Assembly (NCBI GenBank): GCA_907165135.1
Contig: OU015568.1
Span: 4,092,001 to 4,156,000, forward strand
Direction of reading: 5' to 3'
Length of the DNA: 64,000 nucleotides
Source of the DNA: Oikopleura dioica
Lineage: Eukaryota > Animalia > Chordata
Shown here: positions 57,362 through 61,722 of the stretch, one piece after another
How the letters are laid out: each line of letters starts with the position of its first letter
How positions within the stretch are numbered: the stretch's first letter is position 1
Made by a program: the position numbers and the translations under genes
Notes under the pieces: generated by a model
What the model was told of the DNA's origin: nothing
The model's database searches: none
The model's input: only the letters and a program-made list of their open reading frames with translations

Positions 57362-58275
57362 GTCTCCACCCTTAAATTTATCAAAAAGGCTCTATTCGGC
57401 AGAAAATGCGAGAAAAATTACAAATTTCTGGACATTTTTCAAGCCTGACGAACGCAAAATTTCGAATTTGACCAAAATTTTGGTCGTTATTTTATCAATT
57501 TTAAAAAATTGACGATTCTCAAAAGTTTGAACCTTAGTTTTATTTAAAGAACTTCGCCGAAAAACATTCAAATTTGAAGATACTTAAATTTTTTATAACA
57601 CAAAACGGCCTTTTTATAGGAATTTAAAGAAATTACAGAGAGCGCTAGATCATTACTGTAACATCCAGCAGGTAAAAGCTTATGTAATTACTGACTCTTA
57701 TTTTTAACTTTTCAAAATATTTGATTTTCTTGGCAAAATAAACCATGAGCAAAATATGGGAATCCAAAAACAATGATTGTTTTCTAGAAGAATCGAAATT
57801 CTCCTCGTTGATATCACCACCCGGAATATTTCTGCCATTTACACCTCGCTAGCCGGAAAGTGTTTTACGATAGAATCTGTTAGCCAGATTGCTAGAACGC
57901 CTCGTAAAACTGGCGGCGCTGTATTTGTTTATGCTGACCTCATTCAAGAGCCCTATCGGCCTCGTATATTTACTTACGTTGTGAAAATGTTCCAATTCAA
58001 GTTGCTGCACTTTCATCTTTGCTGCGATAGATTTGCTGCACCGGTGAAAAGGGAACAGAGGAAATTTGCTTGCTCTACATTTTCAAGTGATCCGAATTGC
58101 AAAAAATTTGGTGCAAAAGCAAATCTTTATTGAAATAAAAAGAAAAGAAGAAAGAAAAAAATCCGAAAAATCTCGGAGACATGAAAAATATGATCATTTT
58201 CAGGGCTGCAACCCTTCGTATTTCTGACATCGTTGTATTCGCGTTTCGTGTTTTTTTGGATGCTCGCGCGCAGCG

Positions 58276-58470
58276 ATTGGTATTTTGAGCAGGATCCGTT
58301 GTCGTCATTTTTTGATTGGTCGTTTTGTTTGACCGTCGTTTTTGATTGGTTCTGGCTCTTTCTGGCTTTATTCGCCAGGCGTTTTTTTTTTGATTGGACC
58401 AAGCGGGTCGCGTCGGTTTTTGATTCGTCAAGGCGAATGTGATAAAATGTCGACCACTTTTATCACATTC
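58276..58470. promoter_or_regulatory. CCAAT-box array plus a 13-bp inverted repeat containing GATA sites
   Basis: ATTGG at 58276, 58315, 58345 and 58393 (three in the context TTTTTGATTGG); GAATGTGATAAAA-N10-TTTTATCACATTC at 58435-58470. Confidence 0.5.
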
Positions 58471-58739
58471 TTGCGTTTAACATAATTTTATACAAGTAAA
58501 TACGGTTTTTTGGCGTTTGTATGAATTTCGAATTGAAGGTTAAGTTTCACTGAATAATTCTAAAAAGAAAAGTTTTAACCATTTTCCGTTCTAGAGCAAT
58601 TTTATGCCAAAAATATAGTTTGAGTACTATACCGGCTCAGGAAAGTCCTGAAAAGAGAAAAGTTGTTGTCCAAAAATCATCATCTTATCCAAAGCAGGGG
58701 TCCGTTATCCGTGTCGGTTCATCATTTTCCAACATGTCA

Positions 58740-59078
58740 TTAGCAGCCGGGATAGCTCGAGTAGTAGCTGCAGAATAGAGTGAGGCGGATGGCGCGCTCG
58801 TGGACGGATCGGCGGTGCCGGACAAGCAAGTCCTCTCCCGACAGAAACTGAAAGAAATGAAATGAAAAGAATAGGTTGTTGACTTACCCGTTTTGAGCGC
58901 CGCAGCACTTGGGTATCTTCGTCAATGCTAGAATTTTGGATTTTCGAATCTTGTTTTTTGAGATTTATATATTATATAGCTTTTTATATATAATTTCAAT
59001 TATATTCATATATTTCAACCTTGGTACATAAAAAGCGGCAGCTAAGACTGGCAAAAGAAGTGAACCCATCATGACCAT
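58740..59078 (-). CDS. 68-aa peptide-hormone/neuropeptide-like precursor, 3 exons
   Basis: Exons 59078-59020, 58927-58888 and 58847-58740 with canonical GT-AG introns give MVMMGSLLLPVLAAAFYVPSIDEDTQVLRRSKRFLSGEDLLVRHRRSVHERAIRLTLFCSYYSSYPGC*. Confidence 0.75.
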
Positions 59079-59571
59079 CCTGAAATAAGAATTTTAGGGC
59101 AAGAAAAAATCTGTAAAAACCTGTATGAACGGAGAACCGGACGAATTCCAGCCTGCGAAATGGATAAAATCAAGGTTGAGAAGTGAAACAACGCGTTTTA
59201 TAGTCAAATTATCGCGCGGGAGGTGACGTTGAGGAATATTAGACGGGAAGGAGGAGGAATTGAACGATTGATCAGATGAGTTCTGAAGAATCGGGCAGAT
59301 ATTTTGGGAAGCAAAACAACGACAGTTCCAAAAGAAAACTTTCTGGGGTAAACTTTACTTGGCACGCTTATCGGCTTACTTTATCCGTGTCTGAGAAATT
59401 GAGTACAAATCAGTCAAAACAATTGGCAGGTGCTTTTGAGAAATTTTTACGCGCGAGCGCCTTGCCAAGTCGATTGCTGATTTTGATAAAGAATCCGCGA
59501 AATCGGTGACTTATATAAATACGGGCAACTCCCACTATTTTTCATAAAGGAAAATTAGTGAAATCATAAAT

Positions 59572-61722
59572 ATGGAGAAGGATTCTTTTGGAGGAAACAT
59601 GAAAGATTTACTGGATTTTGAAACGATTCAGAGATATTTGGCAGCGAAAGAAGAGGAAGAGAAAGATTGGAAAGAATATATTTATAATGTGAGTATTTAG
59701 ACTATCCTTGCAAAATCAAATGTCCCTCTTTAGGTCTTTATTATTATCAACGGCTGCACAGTCCTCTTCATGCAGTGTGGTTTTGCCCTTCTCGAAGCCG
59801 GAGCAGTCAGATCAAAAAACGTCACCAATATTCTCCTGAAAAACTTCCTCGATCTTCTCATTGGAATCGTGATTTACTGGGCGTTCGGATTTGCATTTGC
59901 TTATGGAAAAGTGAAGGTCAAGGACGACTTTGGGAACTACACCGGATATTCGAAAGCGAATCGATTTCTTGGGCACAAGCACTTCTTTTTGATGGATGAA
60001 GAAGATTTTGGGACGGAGTTGCTAGAAGGATACCCGGAGAGGGTGATTCATATGGGCTCTTTTTACGGAGAGTTTTTTTATAATTTCGTTTTTGCGGCGA
60101 CAGCTACTACAATTACCTCAGGTAAAGGAATCAATCTAATAACAATGCTAGAAACAATATGTATCTCATTTCTTCATTCAACTTTTTGATAGGCGCTTTG
60201 GCTGAGCGATGCAAAATGTCAGCATACTTCATCTACGGCATCATCCTGACCGGTTTCCTCCAGCCCGTAACTGTCCACTGGACCTGGTCCAACGGATTTC
60301 TTCTTTACCCGCAACAGTATCTCGATCTCCCTCCAGAAGTCTACTTCCGCGATTATGCAGGTGGAGTCAATGTTCATGCTGTCGGCGGCCTTGCTGGTCT
60401 TGTCGGTTGTATCTTCATGGGGCCAAGACTTGGAAGATTCGACACAACGAGAAAGTATCATATTCCAGGACATTCAACGCCGCTGACTGGCCTTGGCGCT
60501 TTTATCCTGATGACTGGTTTTCTCGGAATGGTGCTTGGTCATGGACAGAATATTGAACTTTCAGCTACGAATATTGTCCTTGGTGGTGCTACATCAGGTT
60601 CGGGTTTTTCCTCAATGGGCTTTTTATCAATAATTCAGGGCTAACTGCAATGATGATAAAGTGGATCAAACCTCGCCTCGCCGGCCACTCCCGACACAAA
60701 CAATATTGGTCGTTCCTCATCCTCGTTGATTCCACCCTTTGCGGCATGGTCGCCTTATGTGGCGGGTGCAATATCGTACCCCCGTACGGTGCGGCTGTGA
60801 TTGGCGTTCTTGCTTCCCTAGCGTTTCTTGGAATCGAACATCTGATGATCAAATTTCACATAGACGATCCTCTCGGTTCGTTTGCCACGCATTTTGGCGG
60901 GGGAGTCGTTGGTTGCCTCATGACGCCGTTTTTTATGGTCAAAGAACATGCCGGACTTGATGGCATTTTCTTCTGGGAAGGGTGCGATAAGGACTTTGCG
61001 AAGGTAAGAATTATTGATTCGAAAAGAAAGGGCAATTTTTTCTAGGGTCTTCCAGGTTGGGAAGACGGAGCTTGTCTTTACTCTCCATTCTACCAGCTTG
61101 CATGGCACATTGTCGGCCTACTCTGCATTTTCGTCTGGACGATTGTTCTATCTGTCATCGTATTCGGTCTTCTTTGGCGGTTCGGCCAGCTGCGCGTCAA
61201 CTCAGACTTGGAAATTCGAGGCATCGATATTAAACTTCACGGAGAACCGGCTTATCCAAATGCTGCATATGGCCATGGATGGGATAATGAAGGCGATTTT
61301 GCTTTAGAAGGTAAGAGCTCTTCTTGAAACAATAAAACCAAATTTTTCTAGTTCTTGAAGTTCGAAATGGTCTTGATGGGCAAGCAGCTCCAACGGCTCC
61401 TACTGGCATTCATTCAAGAAGAACAGTCAAGGCCCTTATCAACCCGAATTTGCGAGAAAACTGGGTGAACGAAATCCGACCAGGAGGACTTATCGAAATG
61501 ACGATCGCAGAGCAACAGAAAACGATGAAAGTCCTGAAGCATCTTTTAGAAGAAGACGTCGAAGGCGATGTTTCTCTTGGAATGCCCATGGATACATTCA
61601 CTCCATTGTCTGTCATCGGCACAGGGCAGCTGCAGGAGCGACTGAAGCAGCGAGAAATGGTTGCATCGACTTTTTCAAAAGATGGAATTCCGAATCCTGC
61701 GTGCGACATGCGAGATGATTGA
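59572..61722 (+). CDS. AMT: Ammonium transporter (AMT family), divergent pore residues
   Basis: FMQCGFALLEAGAVRSKNVTNILLKN, FAATATTITS|GALAER, HWTW, DYAGGVNVH, GPRLGRF and DDPLGSFATH motifs. Confidence 0.93.

Follow-up and report, generated by a model that had tools for sequence, protein, structure and literature searches.

The window, a stretch of 64,000 nucleotides from the Okinawa assembly of Oikopleura dioica (contig OU015568.1, positions 4,092,001 to 4,156,000), carries on its minus strand an unannotated precursor gene that is real, spliced and transcribed. The coding exons lie at 59078-59020 (59 nt), 58927-58888 (40 nt) and 58847-58740 (108 nt) and join to 207 nt, which is 68 codons and a stop. 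They are separated by two GT-AG introns, the first of 92 nt in phase 2 and the second of 40 nt in phase 0, and the GC content of the exons of the gene is 44-60%, compared with 17-30% for the introns. An ammonium transporter gene (Amt, PF00909) is arranged head-to-head with the precursor gene, and a gene of the sulfate permease family (PF00916) lies downstream of it. The original prediction, of three coding exons with GT-AG splicing and a product of 68 residues, was borne out by the coordinates and the frame; the basic site RRSKR coincides exactly with the end of the second coding exon, as claimed, and both the TATAAAA element and an acceptor just 5' of the ATG were located where they had been placed. 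The description of the gene as having three exons stands for the coding part and falls short for the transcript, which contains at least four exons when the non-coding first exon is counted and probably a fifth after an intron in the 3' UTR. The features are listed here in the order of transcription.

59212-59194, minus strand: run of 19 nt identical in the orthologue by DNA comparison, spanning the TATA element.
59196-59202, minus strand: TATA element TATAAAA, which fits TATAW and not the full TATAWAWR.
59121-59171, minus strand: non-coding first exon, 5' end approximate; reads reach 59120, and 50 of 51 positions are identical in the orthologue.
59080-59120, minus strand: 5' UTR intron, 41 nt, GT-AG; bridged in five reads that run from 58848 to 59120, and matched by a 42-nt GT-AG intron in the orthologue.
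Ending at 59080, minus strand: acceptor AG, separated from the ATG by a single base.
59020-59079, minus strand: first coding exon, with the ATG at 59078, the signal peptide and the start of the propeptide.
59078-59034, minus strand: predicted signal peptide of 15 residues, ending Ala-x-Ala.
58928-59019, minus strand: intron, 92 nt, phase 2, 17% GC; the orthologue has a 71-nt GT-AG intron with 32% identity.
58888-58927, minus strand: second coding exon, acidic spacer and RRSKR (58902-58888), found in spliced reads; RRSKR is invariant, with two silent changes.
58848-58887, minus strand: intron, 40 nt, phase 0; spliced out in 12 RNA reads, retained in the X7 contig, 45 nt in the orthologue.
58821-58847, minus strand: 9-mer FLSGEDLLV, flanked by both basic sites; 9/9 identical, one silent change.
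58809-58820, minus strand: furin-type site RHRR, followed by Ser; 4/4 identical, two silent changes.
58743-58808, minus strand: predicted 22-residue C-terminal peptide, a 12-residue linker and a ring, without an amidation signal.
58772-58743, minus strand: C-x8-C ring, ending at the last residue; 8/10 identical in the orthologue.
58740-58742, minus strand: stop codon, position unchanged in the orthologue.
58550-58632, minus strand: probable 3' UTR intron, 83 nt, GT-AG, from read ends; donor and TTCAG acceptor conserved.
58435-58470, minus strand: 3' UTR hairpin, conserved, with a folding z of about -4 in both lineages.
58126-58131, minus strand: poly(A) signal AATAAA, conserved, with RNA reads in the bin 58124-58254.

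The RNA runs represent a diverged sister lineage in which most reads are less than 90% alike, and alignment was therefore restricted to conserved blocks. The library was unstranded, and the strand of the transcript was read from the splice sites. In the polyA run X4, position 58812 was covered by 27 reads, and 12 reads extended past 58848 into the orthologous upstream exon (D-E-Q-I-L-R-R-S-K-R) at the predicted phase-0 junction. Unspliced intron sequence follows RRSKR in a contig of X7, a run whose labelling as RNA is conjectural. Thus, of the two junctions proposed for checking against RNA, 58888/58847 was found; the other, 59020/58927, joins coding exons 1 and 2. No read showed it directly, and it is accepted because the orthologue conserves its splice sites and frame. 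The reads that connect 58848 with 59120, a GT donor, establish the non-coding first exon and the 41-nt intron of the 5' UTR. No reads were found above 59171 (bin from 59172 up), which fits transcription starting some 30 nt downstream of the TATA box; TATA boxes of O. dioica lie 28-31 bp upstream of the start, and TATA promoters in this species are mostly adult-specific (PMC6389100). At the other end, transcript reads extend to the AATAAA at 58131. Four reads end exactly at 58633, ahead of a conserved GT, while genomic identity continues to 58630, and realign at 58479. These read ends suggest the 83-nt intron, and the 58633/58549 junction itself was absent from the diverged-lineage reads. No RNA reads aligned across 58711-58804, although the orthologous DNA keeps the ring at 8 of 10 residues. 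Position 58812 had 27 reads in 6.7 M in X4 versus 0 in 5.7 M in X6, with Amt covered in both, so expression is sample-dependent; it is also low, at about 4 reads per million, near the level of the Amt neighbour. Such expression, together with the TATA promoter, would suit a product made by few cells.

A scan of metagenomes with a 36-letter degenerate motif from the read-conserved block gave two contigs, identical where they overlap. These match the loose ends of the RNA reads and therefore belong to the same non-Okinawa lineage; the Okinawa and non-Okinawa lineages split about 25 My ago (12-41) (PMC11067885). The orthologue on these contigs keeps the exon lengths of 59, 40 and 108 nt, every splice site, the TATA box, the position of the stop and the head-to-head Amt neighbour. 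Identity between the two precursors is 48 of 68 residues and is unevenly distributed: 9/15 in the signal peptide, 8/13 in the N-terminal propeptide, 5/5 in RRSKR, 9/9 in the 9-mer, 4/4 in RHRR, 5/12 in the linker and 8/10 in the ring. Both basic sites and the 9-mer are together invariant (18/18), and the ring differs by a Ser to Thr and a Ser to Asn substitution. When the sites, the 9-mer and the ring are taken as a core, 26 of 28 residues are identical versus 22 of 40 elsewhere (Fisher p=0.0009), counts that are small because two lineages of one species complex are compared. Within the core, changes were found at 2 of 60 non-synonymous versus 8 of 24 synonymous sites (p=0.0005). The dN/dS ratio is 0.94 for the linker and 0.19 for the ring, and ring and linker differ in non-synonymous changes (p=0.02); tested singly, neither the ring (p=0.10) nor the 9-mer (p=0.26) reached significance. 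Judged from these substitutions, the cleavage sites, the 9-mer and the ring are under purifying selection. The original prediction had staked itself on a spliced transcript and on cysteines and basic sites better kept than the spacer, and both were found, in the spliced reads and in the difference between core and remainder. Conserved peptides and sites among drifting spacers are the usual pattern of a prohormone. The same mosaic has been stated for elevenin precursors (PMC10175484).

The dS of the precursor gene is 0.44 versus 1.44 for Amt, so constraint at the level of DNA or RNA contributes to the conservation; the 9-mer, with purine-rich codons beside the acceptor, is an especially likely place for such a contribution. 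That the locus is mainly a regulatory RNA or an enhancer block for Amt, the peptide being incidental, is nevertheless extremely unlikely. The identical non-coding runs of 54, 23, 21 and 21 nt, the low dS with a conserved UTR hairpin, and a head-to-head linkage to Amt that is kept while the other flank is rearranged would all suit such a function, but exon lengths, frame and stop are kept, the 207 coding nt are free of indels while introns and UTR carry many, and the changes in the core are nearly all silent.

Several conserved elements were observed around the coding exons. The block at 59179-59126 (minus strand), 54 nt identical between lineages whose Amt dS is 1.44, covers the start site and the 5' UTR exon; it contains no ATG and no notable fold, and includes the acceptor-like TTTCGCAG. 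An N-terminal extension of the precursor through the open first exon was not adopted, because the exon has no ATG and the block no silent changes. The intron that follows RRSKR is 45 nt long in the sister lineage (L004 2421-2465), in frame and stop-free, yet it is spliced in reads; the Okinawa intron, 40 nt, contains a stop. A second identical block, 23 nt at 58652-58630 (minus strand), consists of an acceptor, 15 nt encoding D-F-P-E-P in phase 0 and a donor, and doubles as a small hairpin; the exon that follows it (from 58550, minus strand) opens with TGA. Splicing of the RRSKR exon to the acceptor at 58648 may exchange the 9-mer and the ring for the pentapeptide D-F-P-E-P. Sixteen reads retain sequence upstream of this acceptor, so the pentapeptide isoform is not the main form. 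The hairpin at 58470-58435 (minus strand; orthologue L003 2812-2872) has 13 bp and one compensatory change, U-A to C-G; no other copy was found in the genome, and no Rfam family matched, with scores far below gathering. Further short palindromic blocks are conserved at 58214-58194 and 58176-58161. Amt lies at 59572-61400 (plus strand) in the window and is paired in the same way on L004, with about 0.5 kb between the start codons and conserved intergenic blocks; an enhancer shared by the two genes is possible. The other flank is a rearrangement breakpoint, as the downstream neighbour of the orthologue (L003 1-2450) is a different gene and maps to C1:1.62 Mb, 2.5 Mb away in the Okinawa genome. 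Elsewhere in the window, short frames at 53500-53082 (minus strand), one with a signal-peptide-like start (MKLFKFLAVFALGSANLA), point to a possible further gene for a small secreted protein; comparison of these frames with Pfam gave nothing significant.

The reading we favour, and consider probable, is that convertases cut the precursor to yield two products that signal through a lineage-specific GPCR: a ring peptide of 22 residues, not amidated, and a 9-mer. The secretion and cleavage of the precursor, the disulfide and the receptor are each putative, and we infer them as follows. The predicted signal peptide of 15 residues would direct the precursor into the secretory pathway; it is short and without a basic N-region, its opening residues have a hydropathy near +2 in either lineage, and A-A-A in one lineage and A-S-A in the other precede the predicted cut. 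A furin/PC convertase would then cut after RRSKR and after RHRR, and a furin-like convertase is encoded in the genome (E 3e-56). R-x-K/R-R sequences are furin-type sites, compatible also with constitutive secretion. RHRR followed by Ser is the more favourable cleavage context of the two, so the non-amidated 22-mer is the best-supported product. Trimming by carboxypeptidase through R-H-R-R would free the linear 9-mer, which could also remain an 11-mer. A disulfide would join the only two Cys of the precursor and close its last ten residues into a ring presenting receptor-facing residues (three Tyr, Pro and Gly), while the N-terminal linker drifts. Within this drifting linker, A-I-R is retained in both lineages; as a potential third site it would yield a ring peptide of 13-14 residues, but the aliphatic residue that follows disfavours such a cut. 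The products would most likely serve as neuropeptide or hormone, through a class A GPCR specific to the lineage; as both sites are full R-x-K/R-R furin sites, a neuropeptide, a hormone and a paracrine factor would look alike here. The original claim of a secreted prepropeptide that yields a C-x8-C ring peptide and a 9-mer thus gains support from the conservation of the core and from the genomic convertase.

Other secreted products could have a similar layout. Larvaceans secrete many lineage-specific proteins, and the precursor might supply a structural or matrix peptide, such as an oikosin-like component of house or cuticle, from which furin frees a Tyr- and Cys-rich piece for cross-linking. 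Furin-type sites fit such constitutive secretion and the ring does carry three Tyr and two Cys, but reads are few, at a level like that of the Amt neighbour, the gene is single-copy and without repeats, and two small, separately conserved peptides are atypical of bulk matrix proteins. We regard this role as unlikely. A defence peptide is considered very unlikely. Precursors of frog brevinin-type antimicrobial peptides consist of a signal, an acidic spacer, a basic site and a mature helix with a C-terminal Cys ring, and the architecture here recalls theirs; the AlphaFold model of the last-exon product, a predicted helix (residues 4-28) followed by a loop, would agree with it and says little. 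Against this, the net charge of the 22-mer is only about +1 and the ring is neutral, the gene is single-copy, selection on the core is purifying and not diversifying, and the conserved internal RHRR would cut the helix.

Homology searches were made with the last coding exon and with natural open frames, coding exons 1 and 2 having only 19 and 13 codons. Two word-index protein searches, with a 47-aa frame of the window and a 64-aa frame of the orthologue, gave no match, nor did a phmmer comparison of the last coding exon with 1.84 billion representatives. A search of representatives without a length limit should find an annotated orthologue, and the protein therefore appears to be absent from the collections. 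Pfam and the ESM Atlas gave no match, PDB sequences gave none beyond one chance hit (E 0.6), and literal peptide strings were not found in papers. Across 64,281,565 bases in 19 contigs of the genome, no paralogue was found by protein, DNA or degenerate ring pattern; the gene is single-copy. The precursor defines a peptide family that is new, known so far from the O. dioica complex alone and absent elsewhere in the collections searched, inside a familiar kind of system and with no new mechanism. Almost nothing was found in the literature on larvacean peptide signals, and peptide genes of fewer than 70 codons are missing from protein collections for O. dioica. Larvaceans, whose nervous system is very small, rank among the invertebrates most closely related to vertebrates, and the precursor supplies a candidate ligand pair that can be synthesised and set against the few dozen class A GPCRs in the genome.

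Class A GPCR exons in the genome are nearest to angiotensin, opioid, somatostatin and chemokine receptors, so candidate receptors of the peptide type exist. Receptors were compared by single exons at four of about 45 GPCR loci, with AT1R, opioid, SSTR and CCR8 as best matches and no MCHR among the matches listed. One exon, at C4 ~2.973 Mb (L022 1348-1794, minus strand), was the sole exon among those inspected with Asp at 3.32; its best PDB matches are CCR8 and AT1R, again without an MCHR among the matches listed. We regard it as doubtful that cyclic peptides of this kind form a wider family in tunicates or chordates, with the ring peptide as founder and an orphan angiotensin-, opioid- or somatostatin-like GPCR as its receptor; annotation would then have missed such genes because the gene is tiny.

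The precursor was compared with known families of ring peptides. In pro-MCH a linear acidic peptide, NEI, precedes the ring peptide, much as the 9-mer is placed here. The original prediction had noted a weak resemblance to MCH in the size of the ring and in Tyr at loop position 6, the only points in which the rings agree; in both precursors the C-x8-C ring lies near the C-terminus. The resemblance did not hold up, as the ring lacks the LGRVY core and Arg, Pro stands one place earlier, no tail follows the second Cys, and the O. dioica precursor is far shorter than pro-MCH. The activity of MCH depends on the LGRVY core, in which Arg11 binds Asp3.32 (PMC11074101); with neither Arg nor Lys in the ring of either lineage, MCH membership was rejected. 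Elevenin shares two Cys eight residues apart, Pro at loop 7 and an aromatic residue at position 3. It has a conserved Asp-Cys before the ring and a Cys-Arg-Gly tail, residues outside the ring matter for activity, and it is mainly known from protostomes (PMC10175484). Here Phe or Leu precedes the first Cys and a stop follows the second, and elevenin membership was also rejected. MCH and elevenin, which are unrelated, match equally well, and the size of the ring therefore proves little. Membership of the somatostatin, cortistatin and urotensin II families was rejected as the ring lacks FWK/IWK, and that of the allatostatin-C and echinoderm SS1 families as it lacks FXP; the ring has S-Y-P or N-Y-P, with Ser or Asn two residues before Pro. 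As in somatostatin and allatostatin-C, the ring terminates the precursor, a phase-0 intron lies upstream, and a possible second Arg site (A-I-R) could give short and long forms, although the aliphatic residue after A-I-R is unfavourable. The loop has 8 residues versus 6 in ASTC and 10 in human SS, and SS/ASTC genes contain an intron of phase 0 in the N-terminal half (PMC7536072); the intron here follows codon 33 of 68, in a phase that is common and at a position that is not alignable with SS/ASTC.

Strong erosion of a precursor from the superfamily of MCH, somatostatin, allatostatin-C and urotensin II, or from the elevenin group, would account for the putative C-terminal disulfide ring, the 8-residue loop shared with MCH and elevenin, Tyr at loop 6 as in MCH, Pro at loop 7 as in elevenin, the phase-0 intron, which falls within the N-terminal half as it does in SS/ASTC genes (PMC7536072), and the SSTR- and opioid-like receptor exons in the genome. 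We hold this to be distinctly unlikely, as LGRVY/Arg, FWK, FXP, Asp-Cys and Cys-Arg-Gly are all lacking, and MCH receptors are not among the matches listed for the four receptor exons. By the tests made on its sequence, the precursor resembles a ring-peptide prohormone in its predicted working and belongs to none of the MCH, somatostatin, allatostatin-C and elevenin families.

The Ciona peptides Ci-NTLP, Ci-LF and Ci-YFV/L are linear and often multi-copy, whereas the O. dioica precursor has a single ring peptide and a single 9-mer. No match to Ciona precursors was found, in keeping with the original prediction, which recognised no tunicate peptide of such a sequence. The likeness lies in the type of gene, as the Ciona peptides come from the same subphylum and from short secreted precursors that are unlike other peptides, and the receptors of the tunicate-specific peptides form lineage-specific GPCR clades, one of them with presumed Oikopleura sequences (PMC6475428). 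These tunicate-specific Ciona peptides with receptor clades of their own are the nearest precedent for the O. dioica precursor.
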